DNA from: Prasinococcaceae sp. CCMP 1430
Taxonomy: Eukaryota > Plantae > Prasinodermophyta
Assembly: GCA_013416795.1 (NCBI GenBank)
Contig: RQSC01000008.1
Span: forward strand, 279,582 to 343,581
Reading direction: 5' to 3'
Length of the DNA stretch: 64,000 nucleotides
Shown: positions 36,520-44,433 of the stretch, in pieces
How positions within the stretch are numbered: position 1 is the stretch's first letter
Layout of the letters: each line of letters starts with the position of its first letter
Translations under genes and position numbers: made by a program
The notes under the pieces: model-generated
What the model was told of the DNA's origin: nothing
Databases searched by the model: none
The model's input: only the letters and a program-made list of their open reading frames with translations

Positions 36520-37256
36520 AGTGTGTACACGAACTCACGAGCCATTGACTGCTCTTGCAAGGCAGAGCCACACGCCGGTCGTATAAATTTTGTGCTGGCG
36601 TTTTGTAACCTCTCTCCGTGTGCTCGCCCTCGAGCGCTGCGTGCCGGCGCCGCGCTCCGGTCTGGAGGCGCTCGAGGCGCTTGACCTTCCCCCGGGCGCG
36701 CGCGTCTGTTTGAGCGTTGGCAGCTGCGACAGCATGTGTGTGCAGCGTGCTCGTCGCCGGGGCGTGCGTGGCCGGCCGCATGGTGCTGCCGGTCGGTACG
36801 GGCGGCATGCCAAATGCGTCACATCACTGTTTCTTCGCAATTTTTGACTTCTCTGAGGCGCAGAAAGGAGGGAAGAAAAATCAGAAGGCGGACAAAACAT
36901 AGATCAAAATTCATGTGATTTGGTCTAGGTCAAGTTGAATGATACTCCCTCCCGTCGCATCAACGCGCGCAGGCGAGCGAGCGAGCCCGCACTCGTCGCC
37001 TGCCTGCTACCACTGCGCGCGTCCGGGACGCGCGGCAGGCGCACGCGCGCGTGCGCGCCATAAGCGCGCGCCCTCGAGCGCCATCCCGCCGGCACCTCCT
37101 GTCGGCCTGCTGCCAGCGTGCTCGCCTGCCTGGCGCCACCGCCGGCGTCGCATCGGCCGTTTACGGACGCGCGGGCACGACGCAGCGCGCCGCGCGCCGC
37201 GCGCGCGCACGCTGTCAGTCGACTGCGCGCGCTCTGGGGCGGCGCAGCGCGGCGCG

Positions 37257-39035
37257 ATGTCTGCAGACGCCGGCGATCTCGGTCGCAGCGGAGGTGGCAA
37301 CGAGCGTGCTCGCGAACAGCTGTTCTTCCCACCGTTGGCGCAGCAGCGCACCGAGCTGCTCGCGCGAGTCCTCCGCCGCAGCGGCGCAACTGCGGTGGTG
37401 GACCTCGGCTGCGGCGAGCGCGCGTCGACGCTGCGCCGCCTCGCAACGGGCAGCGTGCGAGGGGAGCGCCGCACTGACGAGCAAATGAGAGCAGCGCGCG
37501 CGGCGCGCGATGGCGCCGAGCCATTCAAATTCGCGCCGCCACCGTTTCGCTCCCTGCGGCTCGCTGAGCTGTTGGGTGTCGAGCTGCGTGAACAGGCGGC
37601 CGAGCAGGCAGTGGAGGCAATCAAGACCCGCTCGGCCGCGCTGGCAGAAAAGGCGCCACGCACACGCATCTACCTAGGAGACATGCTTGACGCCCCACCG
37701 CCCGAGCTGCGCGACATCATCCGCGGGGAGAACGACGATGGTGGCGCCAACGGCCTGGTGTGGGCGAGTGAGGTCGTGGAACACCTCGACCCAGAGCCAC
37801 TCGACCGGTTTCCTGCCGCACTTCTCGGCGGTCACCCGCAAGTCGCCGTTGTGACCACGCCAAACGCGGACTACAACGTGCACCTGCCCGGAGTTCGACG
37901 TCCGTGCGATGGCGCCGAGCGTCCTTTTCGTGACCCCGACCACAGGTTCGAGTGGACGCGCGCACAATTCCAGGAATGGGCGAAGGCTGCGGCATTCACT
38001 CATGGCTACGAGGTTGAGTTCGCCGGCGTAGGATCGCTCCCCAACAGCGACCTGCTCAAGGCCCTGAAGAAGCGCCTGCACCAGTCGCTCGCGCTCTTCT
38101 ACTCCGCTAGCACTTTAGACATCGAGCGCCCGAAACCGGAGGGTCTGCCGCCCGGCGCGGGTGCCCTGCGTCACCTCTTACACGAGGGTAGCGACGCGTC
38201 GATGCCGCCATTGGAGGAAGGACTCACGCTCGACGAGCTCGAAGCAGATGTCGATGCTGCACTCGGGGCATTGTCGACATCTGTCATTTTCGACTCGCTG
38301 AGCACCTTGCTGCTTGCGCAGACTGGCCCGAAATTCGAGCAGCTGAGAGCAGCGGTCGAGTCCGATGGGTTCGGCTTGCGGCACGTGCGCTTCGTCGTAA
38401 GCTGGAGGCAGCTCGAAAAGGCGACTGGGTTGCAGGGGCCCAAGGACAGATGCAGCTTGCATGCAAAGAACGCGTCTGCGTGCATCCAAGTGTGTCGAAA
38501 CGATTCAACTTGGTGCACCGTGAGCATGGGCAAGCTCAAGCTGGGCGGAACCTCATCAGCCACTCGGGCAGCGTCCAAACATGCAACCGAGTCGGGATGC
38601 GCAGGAGAAGGGGGCGAAGGACAAGACCGCGCGCTGGTCACTTGCGGTGACGATGCCAGCGACGGTGAGCGGGGTTGCACGCGTTGTCGGTGCCTGTGGT
38701 CTCAGGGCAAGCGCCTTGACTGCTGGAACTGCTCAAAAGATAGCGCAGCACGTCTTGGGTGGAAGGCCGGATGGATTACGGAGATTTGCCGCCCGGCACA
38801 GCAAGTGGAAGGATTCTGCACACAAGTGGCCGTTTTCTATCGACGCAGCGATGGCGATAACTTCGACGATGTTCGCGGTAACACGCACGCGGAACTCGAC
38901 AGCAGGAAAGGATGGACGCTTGTATGGGATGCAGGCTCTTCACATGAGCGAATGGAGGCGGCCGCTAAGCGAAGGGCTGAGAGAGAGTTGTTCGGGCCCG
39001 CAAAACGGTATCGAAGGAGCGAAGGAGATCCGTAA
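37257..39035 (+). CDS. HEN1: HEN1-family small RNA 3'-terminal 2'-O-methyltransferase (compact form, no dsRBDs)
   Basis: FFPPLAQQR (FxPP), VVDLGCGE (SAM binding), EVVEH (metal ligands), TTPNADYN, FRDPDHRFEWTRAQFQEW, GYEVEFAGVG and GFCTQVAVF. Confidence 0.93.
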   Translation: MSADAGDLGRSGGGNERAREQLFFPPLAQQRTELLARVLRRSGATAVVDLGCGERASTLRRLATGSVRGERRTDEQMRAARAARDGAEPFKFAPPPFRSLRLAELLGVELREQAAEQAVEAIKTRSAALAEKAPRTRIYLGDMLDAPPPELRDIIRGENDDGGANGLVWASEVVEHLDPEPLDRFPAALLGGHPQVAVVTTPNADYNVHLPGVRRPCDGAERPFRDPDHRFEWTRAQFQEWAKAAAFTHGYEVEFAGVGSLPNSDLLKALKKRLHQSLALFYSASTLDIERPKPEGLPPGAGALRHLLHEGSDASMPPLEEGLTLDELEADVDAALGALSTSVIFDSLSTLLLAQTGPKFEQLRAAVESDGFGLRHVRFVVSWRQLEKATGLQGPKDRCSLHAKNASACIQVCRNDSTWCTVSMGKLKLGGTSSATRAASKHATESGCAGEGGEGQDRALVTCGDDASDGERGCTRCRCLWSQGKRLDCWNCSKDSAARLGWKAGWITEICRPAQQVEGFCTQVAVFYRRSDGDNFDDVRGNTHAELDSRKGWTLVWDAGSSHERMEAAAKRRAERELFGPAKRYRRSEGDP

Positions 39036-39328
39036 GGAGTTCTCCTTGCGCGCCCTGCCACGCGTACCGACCCCGCGCCTGCGAACAAGTCGTGGTAGGG
39101 AGCACGCGCCTCGCTTCCAATCCTCGACAAGCTCACCGCGGTTAACTGCGTCCTCGATGGGGCTCTGCTCACCGTGGGCGACTGCAAGGCGGTGGTCGCC
39201 TAGCGCGACCACTTCGGCGGCACGTCCACTCGCCCCGTGGACAGACGCGATGGCCGCGCGAAGGCCCCTCGGAGCGATGTGTAAGCAACGAAGAGCCGAC
39301 GGCACGTCCTTGCAGCGCCACATGCCAC

Positions 39329-39615
39329 ATCCGCCACCTCTTCACTAACCGGGTCAAGCAGGCGGACCCAAGCCGCTGGCCGACGGGCAAGGTCTTTCGG
39401 GTCCTTGCCGACGGCCTGCACAGTTCATCGTCGGCATGCGTTCTCCGCGCGTGCGGCGTGCACACACACGACCGCCCCAGGCGCCGCTCTCGCGGCAGCG
39501 CTGCGGGCGGATAGCTAGCTTTCACTCATGCCCTTACTTCTTAGACACACGCGCGCTACGCAACTTCGCGCTTGCGTCTTCTCGTACTGTAATCGCACCC
39601 TTTGCAGCGCTGCTG
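39329..39615 (+). mobile_element. 3' fragment of a putative RLE-type non-LTR retroelement (copy 1)
   Basis: About 280 bp diverged direct repeat of 40310..40590; reads IRHLFTNRVKQADPSRWPTGKVFRVLADGLHSSSSACVLRACG and ends in TACTGTAATCGCACCCTTTGCAGC. Confidence 0.55.
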
Positions 39616-39818: not shown

Positions 39819-40607
39819 ATGGCGGGCAGCTCGTCGCGCTGCGCGAGGAGCTGCAGCAGCAGCGGCAGGACCTGCAGGAGCTCCAGCCGCTCATGCAGCA
39901 GCTGCAGCAGGCGCTCACGCGCCTGCCCCCTGCGCCGCCCACCGACGCAGCCCCTGCGCCGCCCGGCGACGCAATGGCTTCTGGGGCTGTCCCGTCCGCC
40001 CCTCCGATCGCCCCCTGCCAACAGTTTCGCCTCGGTCGCAGCGGTGGCGAGCTCGACGTGTGCTTCGTTGTGGAGCAGTTCCCAGTTGGCGGAGTCGTCG
40101 AGGACAGTGTGAGACCCACGCAGTCCCCGAAGAGGGCCGCGGAAGGCTTGCTGGGGAAGTCGTCCAGAGCCATGCGGCCCCCCGGCGCCTGGAGGTGATC
40201 GCTTGGGTCGACGTCCAGCGCTACGCGCACATCTGCGCGCACCACACCATCCAGTTCCACACGCTGGCGTTCGACACCCTGGGCCGTGCGCACAGGTCCA
40301 CCATGGGGGACATCCTTCACCTCTTCACCCAGCGGGACACGCAGGCGGACTCAAGCTGCTGGCCGACGCACAAGGTCCTTCGAGTCCTTGCAGACGGCCT
40401 GCACAGTTCATCGTCGGCATGCGTGCTCCGCGCGTGCGGCGTGCACACACGCGACCACCCAAGGCGCCGCTCTCGCAGCCGCGCTGCGGGAGGATGGCTC
40501 GCTCTCACACACGAACCTAGATCTTACACACGCGCGCTACGCAACCTTGCGCTTGCGTCTTCTTGCACTGTAATCGCACCCTTTGCAGCAGCAGCAGCAG
40601 CAGCAGC
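39819..40607 (+). mobile_element. Degenerate, probably internally deleted non-LTR retroelement (copy 2) with (GCA)n tail
   Basis: Frameshifted coiled-coil ORF start (QLVALREELQQQRQDLQELQ), then RYAHICAHHTIQFHTLAFDTLGRAHRST resembling the C-terminus of an RLE endonuclease. Ends in a 3' UTR, ACTGTAATCGCACCCTTT and (GCA)7. Confidence 0.55.
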
Positions 40608-40641
40608 GTCAGCGCGTTTCCGGAGTCCTGGCTGCTCAGTT

Positions 40642-40671
40642 GCTGCTAAGGGTGCGATTACAGTACGAGAA
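40642..40671 (-). repeat. Inverted third copy of the element 3'-terminal motif
   Basis: 40648..40671 is the exact reverse complement of 39579..39602 (TTCTCGTACTGTAATCGCACCCTT), followed on the minus strand by AGCAGC. Confidence 0.9.
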
Positions 40672-40675
40672 CAGC

Positions 40676-43600
40676 TCAGTTGTATGGCATCATCTCGTCC
40701 TGAACTTCCTTGAGCCTAGCGACGAAGCTTCCAAACGTTACGACCAGATGTGAGTCGCTCCCGCTGAATCTTGTACCTGAACGCCCAGTCACCGTGTCAC
40801 TGGAACCCCTGTTTTGCCGACTGAGCTGCTTGCATGGTGGCCTAGGCGATTCGTGAACACATGCTCCAGTGCGGTCAGCTCCAGCCAAAGCGAGTAGCAG
40901 TCATCGCTGCGACAGCAAGCAGCGCACGCGCTGTCGCAACATCTACTCACCCGCCGACCGTCGCATGAGGAAATCCGTGCCTCTTGCACAGCTTGATCAT
41001 TTCGTTGCGGTTGTGATACGCCTCACAGGTTGTGAGGGATCCCTCGTTAACGAAGTTTCTGACGGGCTTCTTGAGAACGTCAGTCCACCAGTGCTTTACA
41101 CACTCGGTCCTATCCTCGTCGATTTCCCACACCACCAGCTTGCGGATCCCCTCGTAGCTTTCATCTGCACGAGTAAGGACATTCTGGATCGCGAGAGGAA
41201 TTCCACCGATGCCATCGCACACGGAGAAGACGGTGATGCCGACGCCTCGGGCCATCGCCTGCTGAACACGAGGATACGTCGGCAATGGGCTCAGGAGGTA
41301 TTCGATGGTTCTCACGTCGACCGAGTTCCCGAGCGCTTCGCGTCTGGCCTTTGGACGCCCGCAGTACAGCGTGTGGCCGTCGGGAAAGCCCATCACACGC
41401 TCCGCAAGCTTTGCCGGCATGACCTCCACCTGGTTCACTCTCGCTCCAACGGGGACAAGATTGAAGCCCTTGATTTGGGCAATAGCTTTCGAGCCCTTCT
41501 TGACTTCGTCATTGATACTCTTCGCGCGCAGCACCGCCTCGTACACCTTGGGTGACTCGTACTCTTTCGTCGAAATCATGGAGAAGCGATGAACGACAGA
41601 AGCGTACCACATCGGCATGGCTTCAAGTCTCAAGACGTCCTTCATCATCTCGTGCATCTGGTCCCGCCGCTGAATCGCCGCTTGCTCGTGCGTGGCGGTC
41701 GGTTTCACGTGTCCGCGCAAGTTCGTGATGTAAACACGATCGCGAAGGGCTGTGCTCCACTGCGGCCAGCTGTTGAGCCTGACCCAAGGCAACGTCAGCA
41801 TCGCGGCGCTGAAATTGTTGAGCTCTCTCTTCTCCGTTGGGTACACGTTCTCAAATAGCAGTGCAAACTTTATCCCCGAGACTTCGTCTTCTGGGAGCTC
41901 CCACAGCATCTTGTCTCCCTGGCCGCCAGACGGCCGGGGCGGTGGCAGCATTGAGGGAAGTCTGATCGACTGCCGCCTCTCGGAAGCACGCTCGCGCACG
42001 CCTGCGCTTGTCTGCCGCCCCAGTCCAGGCAGTGCGTCGTGTTGGTGGTCACCGGACGCCCCGCCGATTCCCCCAATGCAACTCTCGCTATGGCTGATGA
42101 CCATACCTTCGCCGTTCGTGTCTTCGCTGGGCGGGGGGTCCGGGTATGCCACGTGCCGCGAACCTTGGATGAGCCTTCCGCGAGCCCGCCCCGGGAAGCG
42201 CGCCGCAACTTGGCGATTCTCAGGCAGCCAGAAGTCTCGGCAGACGTCATCAGCAGGGGCGTTGAAGTTCGAAAGTGGCTGCCAATCGTCGTGGGAACGA
42301 CCGTAGTGCATCCAACTTACCTTCAGGTATCTGATGCCCCTAATCAGGGTGTCGTCGATGATTGCCTCGATATGGTACTCCCTGCCCGGCTCGTTGGCCT
42401 CTTGCTCCTCGTCGCCATCGCCCTCGTCGCTGCTGCTGACTTGGAGTGCAGTCGATGGGGTCCCGCTCGCTTGCCGCACACAAGGACTCGCGCTTCTTTT
42501 CTCCATGGACCTCGTGCACATGCGCCGTGGCCTCGGGGGCAGTGCTCCGCTTTCTTGGTCCTCTTTCTCCAGTCGCCTAGCCAGCTCCTCCGAGCTTTTC
42601 ATCTGCCGCTCGTGGCGTTCGAGCCAACGCTGGTTGGCCTCGACTTCGCCTGGCTTCAGCATCGCCATCGTCAGGCGCTCCTCTTCTCTGCGCCGCTTGT
42701 TCGCTTCCAGGGTTTCCATCGCCAACAATTTGAGCGATGCCCGCTCCTCTTCCTCCCGGGCTCGCTTCCGACGCACCTCTTGTTTCCGTTCCTCCTCCTG
42801 CATCGACTCGGCCAATTGCGCGTCCTTCTCCGCTTGCTCGTCCCACTGAAGGCGTGCGCGTGCGCGTGCCGCCTCCTCTTCAATGAGCGCCGCAGCGAAC
42901 TCTGCGTCGCGCCTAGCTTGCTCCGCACGAGACGTGTCCTGCTCGGCGGCCATTCGCAGCATGTCTTGGGCAAGCGATGCGTCGGCATCTACCTGCGCAT
43001 CCGTGCGGAGTGCGCGTTGTTCGGCGATCACAGGGGCGTCGGCCACGCCTTGTACCTCTGTGGCTTGCGTGGGCGCGGGCGCCTCGATCGTCGCGGCCGC
43101 ACTTGCGAAACCGCCAGCGAGGGCGGGCGCGTCTGCGACTGCGAGCCCGACGGTGTGGTCGTCGTCTGTCGTATGTTCAGCGATCACAGGGGCGTCGGCC
43201 ACGCCTTGTACCTCTGTGGCTTGCGTGGGCGCGGGCGCCTCGATCGTCGCGGCCGCACTTGCGAAACCGCCAGCGAGGGCGGGCGCGTCTGCGGCTGCGA
43301 GCCCGACGGTGTGGTCGGGCGCGTCTGCGACTGCGAGCCCGACGGTGTGGTCGTCGGAGCGTACCAGCGCTGGCCCCTCAGCAAGTGTAGCAGATGGCTC
43401 GGGGTGCGCAAGAGCTACAGCACGCGCCGGTGGCTCGTGTCCTAGCTCAGCTTCATCGAGCTCTCCTGGCTCGCACTCGCTGGCTGTTCTCACCGCCGCC
43501 GTGCCATCGCCCGGCTGCGGTGCCGGCTCGGGGTCATCGTCGGAGCCAAGTAGCGCTGGCGCGTCGGCAAGTGCGGATGTCTCGGGGTGCGCAGGAGCTA

Positions 43601-43769
43601 GAGCGCGCGTCGGTGGCTCGCGTCCCGGCTCAGCTGCGTCGAGGAGCTCGCCGGGCTCGGCATCATCGATGCTGAGCCCTAGCTCCCTCGCGATGTCGTC
43701 CACGCGGCGTGCCGCAGCGGAGCGCGCCGCCTCGATGGAGCGACGAGCGGCTGCGGCCGGCTCGTCCAT
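40676..43769 (-). CDS. Chromodomain-containing, circularly permuted (DRM-type) C5 cytosine DNA methyltransferase; exons 43769..40951 and 40841..40676
   Basis: Chromodomain (EYHIEAIIDD..RYLKVSWMHY..DDWQPLSNF). MTase motifs in the order VI FENV, VIII RDRVYITNL, IX ERVMGFPDGHT, X LGNSV, I FSVCDGIGG, II WEID. A GTGAGT..CTAG intron then gives motif IV VGG|PPCKQLS. Confidence 0.9.
43021..43350 (-). repeat. Intragenic tandem duplications in the methyltransferase N-terminus
   Basis: ~159-bp unit duplicated (APALAGGFASAAATIEAPAPTQATEVQGVADAPVIAE x2) and DHTVGLA(V/A)ADAP x3. Confidence 0.9.
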
Positions 43770-43813
43770 GCGGGCGTCACACGCTGATTTTCCTGCCCGC
43801 GCTGCGCGGGCAG

Positions 43814-43846
<33 letters not shown>

Positions 43847-44433
43847 TTGGTGCCCGCGCTGAGGCCGGTCTGCCCCGCGCGTGAGGGCGTGCGAGGCGCA
43901 GTGGCGGCGGCCTGAGGGGATTCTCCTCTTCACCGGCGCCCCGCGTTGACGGGGGAGGGTGCGCGCGCTCTGGCATTTGGTCGCGCGCGCAAAAAGCGCC
44001 GCGCGCGACGCGCGGCAGGCTGTCGCTGACAGCGACAGCGCAACGAAAGCGAGATCAGCCCGGACGCGCGCTCTCGCTTTGATCTGACCTGATCGCATGC
44101 ACTTTCAGGACGTCATTTGACCTTGCACGTTTAGCATTAAGGTTGATGTGCACTTGACCGATTTGCGATCGCCGTCAACTTCAACGTGACACGCGCGCGG
44201 ACGCACTCGAAGAAGGCAATGCAAACGCAAGCGGCGGTGGTGGGCTGATGGCCGTGATGGTGTTTCGCACGCATATTTCCTGCATGCATTTTCAGAGGAC
44301 CGAACCATTCGCATGCTCCTATACGCAGCTTAGATGAAACGCAACCGTAACCGCTGCGGTCTCGTTTTGATACGCGCGCGCGCGCGGCGGCGGCGGCGCC
44401 ACTGCGCGCGCAGCAGCGTGAGCTGCGGCGGGG

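Follow-up and report, generated by a model that had tools for sequence, protein, structure and literature searches.

We consider it fairly probable that the minus-strand gene between positions 40676 and 43769 of a 64,000-nt stretch of the genome of Prasinococcaceae sp. CCMP 1430, an early-branching marine green alga (contig RQSC01000008.1 of GenBank assembly GCA_013416795.1, positions 279,582–343,581 of the forward strand; hereafter the window, to which all coordinates refer), is a single-copy, expressed host gene that encodes a circularly permuted C5 DNA cytosine methyltransferase of 994 amino acids (aa), in which a chromodomain would read methyl-lysine and the catalytic domain would methylate cytosines de novo. 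An earlier note, made from the sequence alone, had proposed a fusion of a chromodomain with a permuted domain of the DRM type, the catalytic cysteine of which is encoded by an exon hidden behind an apparently truncated open reading frame (ORF).

The catalytic domain carries its motifs in the order VI, VIII, X, I, II, IV, V, which is the DRM-type circular permutation, and all catalytic and S-adenosylmethionine-binding motifs of a C5 methyltransferase are present: PPC with Cys943, FENV, RDR, CDGIGG, WEID and LGNSV. Pfam returned nothing relevant for the whole ORF; only domain-sized pieces gave matches, below threshold, to DNA_methylase and Chromo, with positions 153–319 of PF00145 matching the front of the catalytic domain (E 8e-4; 19.4 bits against a cut-off of 22 bits). 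In a phmmer search of the PDB, the best matches are Arabidopsis DRM2 (E 5.5e-5) and tobacco DRM (E 3e-4), with an alignment that crosses the junction from motif X to motif I, followed by DNMT3B and DNMT3C (E 0.3–0.6). We predicted the structure of aa 620–940 with AlphaFold2 (AF2) from an 18-row alignment and obtained a model with a pLDDT of 80 and a pTM of 0.84. The top eight Foldseek matches of this model in the PDB are all DRM structures (E 1e-18 to 9e-17; TM-score about 0.70; 319–336 columns), and the next are DNMT3A, DNMT3B and DNMT3C, which align over 206–221 columns only (E 4e-5 and weaker, to 1e-3; TM-score 0.32–0.38). A search of the ESM Atlas likewise gave plant DRM clusters at TM-scores of 0.76–0.77 and DNMT3 at 0.45–0.47. 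For a predicted model, full-length agreement with DRM and partial agreement with DNMT3 is what a DNMT3-like fold permuted in the DRM manner should give. Chance does not account for the motif order, because PF00145 153–319 matches the domain front, the alignment with DRM2 spans the junction, and the predicted fold matches DRM at an E-value of 1e-18. The five motifs located in the earlier note (FENV, RDRVYITNL, LGNSV, FSVCDGIGG and WEID) lie where it had placed them, its assignment of a DRM-type permuted domain is borne out by sequence, by the alignment of relatives and by the predicted fold, and the overlay on DRM2 that it had suggested gives a model collinear with the tobacco and Arabidopsis enzymes over the full length (TM-score 0.70).

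The ORF at 40947–43976, the single long frame on the minus strand of the region, ends with ATVGG followed by TGA. The claim that a complete enzyme lies behind this truncated frame depended on a 109-nt intron, and its donor GTGAGT, its branch sequence GCTGAC, about 32 nt ahead of the acceptor, and its acceptor TAG are all in place. Joining 43769–40951 to 40841–40676 yields a coding sequence (CDS) of 2985 nt in two coding exons, in which the frame reads GG/PPCKQLS across the splice junction (slash) and motif IV, with Cys943, and motif V are restored. Contigs of four public runs (X1, X2, X3 and X10) were aligned to 40300–44200; X1 and X2 are culture transcript assemblies of the same coded organism. 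The aligned contigs contain exactly one joint, at 40840/40950 (cut +1), which skips 109 nt and reads CT..AC on the plus strand, equal to GT..AG on the gene strand. One contig of X1 (2380 nt) and one of X2 (2504 nt) carry it, with a short side of 222 nt. In the DNA-type run X10, one contig is unbroken from 40619 to 43084 and contains the intron. Because the intron is present in the DNA contig and skipped in the transcript contigs of X1 and X2, it is removed at the RNA level; the exon junction 40951/40841 that the earlier note had predicted is thus found in spliced transcripts and is absent from the DNA run. No further joint was found in the aligned contigs between 43793 and 40619, and the transcript contigs are collinear with the genome from 43222/43053 to 40950 and over 43327–43793, while 43223–43326, inside a tandem repeat, is spanned by none of them. 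The probable start codon is the ATG at 43769, the first in the transcribed stretch, because the transcript contigs stop at 43782–43793, beside a GC-rich repeat; the ORF remains open upstream to 43976.

Two features of the transcript deserve separate mention. The 5′ splice site overlaps the stop codon of the unspliced frame, as GG/GTGAGT is also read GGG TGA (splice site 40947–40952; stop 40947–40949), and therefore retention of the intron would end the protein at ATVGG and deprive it of the catalytic cysteine. The 156-nt tandem repeat near the start of the gene corresponds to a 52-aa low-complexity unit; transcript and DNA assemblies break there, and environmental variants differ there. Downstream of it, the charged region has no match in Pfam even at E 10.

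The region of aa 462–515 is inferred from its sequence to have a chromodomain fold. Specifically, phmmer matches it in the PDB to Clr4 (E 9.1e-5), human CBX5 (E 1.1e-4 to 2.3e-4) and Drosophila HP1 (E 1.3e-3), and 36 of the 37 PDB matches to this query are chromodomains. Of the 60 named clusters nearest to it in a language-model search, 58 belong to Pfam Chromo (score 0.92). Residues Y465, W486 and Y489 align with the aromatic cage positions of CBX5 and Drosophila HP1, the sequence WQP aligns with the conserved WEP, and the cage residues are invariant in 17 environmental variants. The module lies about 100 residues upstream of the catalytic domain and not inside it, so that the N-terminal chromodomain with an intact Y-W-Y cage described in the earlier note stands. 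H3K9me would most likely be its preferred ligand, on the sole basis that the nearest relatives of the module are readers of this mark. No UBA domain was detected by Pfam at E up to 1 in the whole ORF or at E up to 10 in the charged region (aa 290–420), nor did Pfam find a PWWP, ADD or BAH domain in the whole ORF.

An exhaustive HMMER search of 1.84 billion representative proteins (E up to 1e-3) returned 18 matches, one of which (P0008) is a repetitive false positive. All named relatives belong to the green lineage, trebouxiophytes and charophytes included: Pycnococcus provasolii, Picocystis salinarum, Tetraselmis striata, Apatococcus, Symbiochloris, Neomeris, Klebsormidium (with a UBA), Chlorokybus, a DRM2-like protein of Daucus, and Oldenlandia. 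Neither an unpermuted enzyme nor a viral or prokaryotic relative occurs among the 18 matches. In most relatives, positions 1–100 of PF00145 match at the C-terminus, and these relatives are therefore permuted; all sequences that span the junction have the same layout of motif X, an LSPL-type conserved tail, a short linker and motif I. In 5.8 billion proteins, word-indexed searches found only a near-identical TARA protein (P0001) and no annotated full-length model, and a scan of metagenome DNA with a lineage-specific alignment gave no further relatives. The second exon is conserved as well: phmmer alignments with the spliced sequence run through it in eight relatives, a MAFFT alignment with 14 relatives matches GGPPCK to GGSPCN or GGPPCN and contains the downstream GRxG...S.LF block, and exon 2 aligns with GGSPC or GGPPC and that block in 12 relatives.

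An unrooted IQ-TREE phylogeny of 15 domains, built without DNMT3, CMT or ChloroDNMT sequences, has three groups: the streptophyte DRMs, from which the studied gene is excluded (100/98 support); the chlorophytes, with weak support; and the studied gene together with the Pycnococcus-like protein P0024 (100/100), on a long branch (1.88). Because it falls outside the streptophyte DRM clade, the gene is of the DRM type rather than a DRM orthologue. The relatives, green-lineage proteins with the permuted order, support the DRM-type reading of the earlier note, and the tree qualifies it: the gene does not join the DRM clade in a tree that is unrooted and has neither DNMT3 nor CMT. The permuted type is not unique to Prasinococcaceae sp. 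CCMP 1430, and it has relatives in several chlorophyte classes.

The closest homologue is the Pycnococcus type (P0024 from a marine metagenome; GHP04336.1 of Pycnococcus provasolii), which is 44–49% identical and has the same motif order, FENV and GGPPC. Unlike the studied protein, P0024 has no detectable chromodomain, and its N-terminus is a beta-rich segment without assignment. In the Pycnococcus provasolii reference genome (L002, 8000–10780), only a 298-aa C-terminal ORF appears to be present, annotated as 259 aa and comprising the target-recognition region, motif X and motifs I–V; the part of P0024 with motifs VI–VIII is not found upstream of it, where an opposite-strand gene stands instead. 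The chlorophyte proteins (Picocystis A0A6U9QIX2, Tetraselmis striata TSEL_027153, Apatococcus, Symbiochloris and Neomeris) are permuted in the same way as the studied protein but are only 25–29% identical to it and have YEQV or FEQV as motif VI.

Upstream of the permuted domain, a weakly chromo-like segment (VKW.GYE...W), with a signal short of significance, is seen in Tetraselmis striata P0014 (aa 312–375), in P0012 (362–432) and in P0018 (50–125). All seven PDB matches of the Tetraselmis segment are chromodomains, but with E-values of 0.19–1, and the language model matches the chlorophyte segments to Chromo with scores of 0.86–0.88. A profile of the three chlorophyte segments found no chromodomain, and the segments of P0012 and P0024 have no chromodomain match in the PDB. 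The chromodomain fusion may be wider than the Prasinococcaceae sp. CCMP 1430 genome. By eye, UIM-like motifs can be recognised in Tetraselmis, which has three, and MIU-like motifs in the studied gene (DAQLAESMQEEE, 42840–42900), Symbiochloris, Neomeris and the Pycnococcus-like protein; these N-terminal features, among them the short acidic helices of non-streptophyte DRM-type proteins that resemble ubiquitin-binding motifs, lie, again by eye, at aa 110–175 of P0014, 1–70 of P0016, 80–95 of P0013, 45–60 of P0024 and 80–260 of P0017. Pfam gives no support for these short UIM- or MIU-like motifs. By analogy with the UBA domains of streptophyte DRMs, ubiquitin binding may be a family-wide theme. 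The Chlorokybus relative has, by eye, four C2HC fingers.

Among characterised enzymes, DRM2 and NtDRM (PDB 7L4C, 4ONJ) have the same order, VI–X and then I–V, and the same junction, and are the best PDB matches in both sequence and structure. DRM2, which is related to DNMT3, has an N-terminal UBA and acts in small-RNA-directed methylation, whereas the studied protein, about 21% identical to it, has a chromodomain and no UBA. The animal enzymes DNMT3A, DNMT3B and DNMT3C are the next-best structures and have in common with the studied protein the signatures LFENV, RxRxY.xNL, GxS...V and FDGI. Both are coupled to a Royal superfamily reader of histone methylation, a predicted one here. In DNMT3 the readers are PWWP and ADD and not a chromodomain, and the motif order is linear, so that only about 210 columns align with the permuted protein. 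CMT3 and ZMET2 also join a chromodomain to a C5 methyltransferase, and a common logic from H3K9 methylation to DNA methylation can be proposed. CMTs differ in being DNMT1-type, unpermuted and equipped with a BAH domain, and their chromodomain lies between motifs II and IV, whereas here it is N-terminal, with a linker of about 100 aa between it and the catalytic domain; in the PDB, CMT matches (E 0.1–0.3) are confined to the chromodomain part. The ChloroDNMT clade (PMC12344493), compared here by its description only, is green-algal, has a Royal-family reader that is often PWWP, and has a taxon range that partly coincides with the chlorophyte matches. It might overlap the chlorophyte permuted group, but Pfam found no PWWP in any of the relatives, unlike in many ChloroDNMTs.

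Sequencing depth and variation bear on the status of the gene in its genome. DNA depth is 42 over the CDS, compared with 700–2700 over the adjacent repeats. On the TARA scaffold L001 the gene recurs with 98.8% DNA identity; its intron and exon 2 are identical there, and the upstream neighbours are the same. The ratio of non-synonymous to synonymous polymorphism (pN/pS) relative to L001 is 0.23, with eight synonymous differences and one non-synonymous difference in the catalytic domain, and among the 17 environmental variants 4% of sites vary in the catalytic domain and 14% in the linker. Purifying selection acts on the gene. Readings of it as a pseudogene, as transposon-borne or as viral in origin were considered and rejected on the grounds of splicing and depth, relatives, and pN/pS.

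The GC content of the region is 60–75%, and at the gene it is 0.60, somewhat below that of the flanks. A homologue of the HEN1-type small-RNA 2′-O-methyltransferase (36939–39035, plus strand; PDB 3HTX, E 9e-20) converges on the methyltransferase gene, with repeat remnants standing between the two. An adjoining H+-PPase gene has its closest named match, at 79% identity, in the prasinophyte Cymbomonas, in agreement with the attribution of the DNA to an alga outside the streptophytes, which had been made without knowledge of its source. The sequence CTGTAATCGCACCCTT occurs at 39587–39602 and 40568–40583 on the plus strand, where it ends tandem repeat copies (39327–39608 and 40310–40589) and is followed by (GCA)n, and at 40648–40663 on the minus strand, in sense orientation in the 3′ untranslated region (UTR) of the methyltransferase gene, which creates an inverted pair. 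In X1 and X2, several unrelated transcript contigs have CTGTAATCGCACCCTT at their end, and DNA depth there is 700–2700. It could be the 3′ end of a retroelement or a common transcript-end element.

Table 1. Features of the methyltransferase gene (positions in the window; splice junctions marked by a slash)
Feature	Position	Strand	Content and basis
Coding exon 1	40951..43769	-	aa 1–939 and two bases of the Gly940 codon; from N- to C-terminus: low-complexity N-terminus, charged helical region, chromodomain, linker, motifs VI–X, then I–III; ORF, translation, collinear transcript contigs
Tandem repeat, 156-nt unit, two 144-nt copies (family D2)	43018..43320	-	Encodes low-complexity N-terminal region; repeat search
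Charged, probably helical region, aa 285–440	42450..42917	-	Without family match; sequence
HP1/Clr4-like chromodomain (putative), aa 462–515	42225..42386	-	PDB phmmer, language-model search, Pfam E 0.021
Cage residue Y465	42377-42375	-	
Cage residue W486	42314-42312	-	
Cage residue Y489	42305-42303	-	
Catalytic domain, first half	41295..41912	-	Motifs VI and VIII, target-recognition region, motifs IX/X; alignment, Pfam, AF2, Foldseek
Motif VI	41855-41844	-	FENV
Motif VIII	41744-41718	-	RDRVYITNL
Motifs IX/X	41333-41319 (LGNSV)	-	MGFPDGHT...LGNSV
Catalytic domain, second half on exon 1	40951..41252	-	Motifs I and II/III to ATVGG; continues on exon 2
Motif I	41228-41202	-	FSVCDGIGG
Motifs II/III	41129-41118 (WEID)	-	WEIDED
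Intron, 109 nt, phase 2	40842..40950	-	GTGAGT...GCTGAC...TAG; skipped in X1 and X2 contigs
Coding exon 2	40676..40841	-	aa 940–994 and stop (40676-40678); motif IV PPC (Cys943) and motif V
Motif IV	40834-40832 (Cys943)	-	GG/PPC; motif V next, on exon 2
3′ UTR, at least to 40619	40619..40675	-	Contains CTGTAATCGCACCCTT (40663-40648) and enters a (GCT)n tract; transcript contigs end at 40619 at a masked repeat

The explanation that we favour, a host enzyme guided by its own chromodomain, would work as follows. The chromodomain would bind a methylated lysine of histone H3, likely H3K9me2/3, and docking would tether the enzyme to marked chromatin or activate it there; the enzyme would then methylate cytosines de novo, as DNMT3 and DRM do. 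The CMT logic, from histone mark to DNA methylation, would be implemented on a DNMT3/DRM catalytic engine, and a small-RNA guide would not be needed. Both the reading of methyl-lysine and the de novo activity are inferences.

Several observations weigh against this explanation or limit it. The Pfam Chromo match lies below its cut-off (15.2 against 25.1 bits; E 0.021), and the AF2 model of the chromodomain, computed from a three-row alignment, predicts three strands at a pLDDT of 47 and is not trustworthy. A shared culture, or even shared raw reads, may underlie X1 and X2, and their support for splicing may thus not be independent, while the seawater metatranscriptome X3 contains an unspliced contig (40692–40940), which could represent pre-mRNA or carried-over DNA. 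Without a DNMT3 outgroup the tree shows no direction, so that it does not prove that the permutation arose once, and since P0024 has no detectable chromodomain, the fusion may be recent or confined to this lineage. Enzymatic activity, its sequence context and the histone ligand are predictions.

Four other explanations were weighed, each of which is less likely than the favoured one. The enzyme could be guided by small RNAs, as DRM2 is during RNA-directed DNA methylation (RdDM) in streptophytes, with the chromodomain merely stabilising binding. The HEN1 homologue that adjoins and converges on the gene, and the rank of DRM2 as the best structural match, speak for this, but Pfam detected neither a UBA nor a recognisable Argonaute-binding feature in the whole ORF or the charged region, and RdDM based on RNA polymerases IV and V (Pol IV/V) has been described for streptophytes (PMC12344493). 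Moreover, adjacency of eukaryotic genes rarely signals a common function, and the neighbours differ at the Pycnococcus locus; we regard small-RNA guidance as unlikely. Slightly less credence is given to a regulatory role, in which the protein would be a catalytically weak paralogue like DRM3 or DNMT3L, or in which intron retention would produce a regulatory isoform without the cysteine. A retained intron would indeed impose an immediate stop after ATVGG and remove motifs IV and V, an unspliced contig exists in X3, and motif IV reads PPCK instead of the usual SPCN. Nevertheless, the spliced form has all catalytic motifs, PCK also occurs in Tetraselmis, both culture transcript assemblies are spliced, carried-over DNA or pre-mRNA may account for the X3 contig, and no part of the protein is more constrained than the catalytic domain.

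The likeness to plant DRM could also be topological only, the permutation having arisen convergently and independently. This would fit the long branch (1.88) on which the gene and the Pycnococcus-like protein stand outside the streptophyte DRMs, in a tree that is unrooted and lacks DNMT3, but the junction is identical in all three tree groups, the phmmer alignment with DRM2 spans it, and the exhaustive search retrieved no unpermuted enzyme among its 18 matches; convergence appears about as improbable as small-RNA guidance. Far less probable than any of these is a gene that a retroelement or virus carries or has left behind. The 3′ UTR does contain the motif with which copies of a repeat family end, the gene is followed directly by two tandem remnants of that family, and the GC content (0.60) is somewhat lower than that of the flanks; against this, the CDS is single-copy by depth and has a spliceosomal intron, there are no reverse transcriptase, integrase or gag neighbours, the host neighbours are common to the TARA scaffold L001, the gene is under purifying selection, and it has no viral or prokaryotic relatives.

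Published surveys do not anticipate a gene of this kind. DRM has been described as restricted to streptophytes, and the DNMT3s of protists and algae as lacking companion domains (PMC12344493, 2025); Table S1 of that study lists 0 DRM, 0 DNMT3 and 0 ChloroDNMT for Prasinoderma coloniale. Another survey reported no DNMT3 in the green algae of MMETSP and no chromatin domains on microalgal DNMT3s (PMC9998398, 2023), and a third found DNMT3/DRM homologues only in Cyanidioschyzon and Klebsormidium (PMC9861306). Full-text literature searches found no description of a chromodomain–DRM fusion, in line with the earlier note, according to which the architecture is not known to have been described, and the surveys of 2025 and 2023 state the opposite expectation. 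Such genes are missed because a small terminal exon encodes the catalytic cysteine and neither domain reaches its Pfam cut-off.

Under the favoured explanation of a chromodomain-guided host enzyme, permuted DNMT3-like enzymes would predate streptophytes, and the reader module would vary by lineage, being a chromodomain here and a UBA in streptophytes. A further proposal, which we advance tentatively and consider possible rather than probable, is that the permutation originated in the ancestor that all green plants share, before Pol IV/V RdDM existed; targeting would originally have operated by direct reading of chromatin marks, through a chromodomain and perhaps short ubiquitin-binding motifs, and streptophytes would later have swapped in the UBA and small-RNA guidance. 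In current accounts, the rearranged DRM enzymes belong with streptophytes and with the rise of RdDM; the gene described here, which is expressed and constrained, is a counter-example from a marine green alga that branched off early. Published surveys understate both the age and the variety of this enzyme type; the permutation would date further back in time and would be separate from RdDM. The predicted architecture also makes the protein a simple and testable example of a de novo-type enzyme wired directly to a histone mark. If the early-origin proposal is true, the gene would be a living example of the state before RdDM, and the published restriction of DRM to streptophytes would have to be revised.

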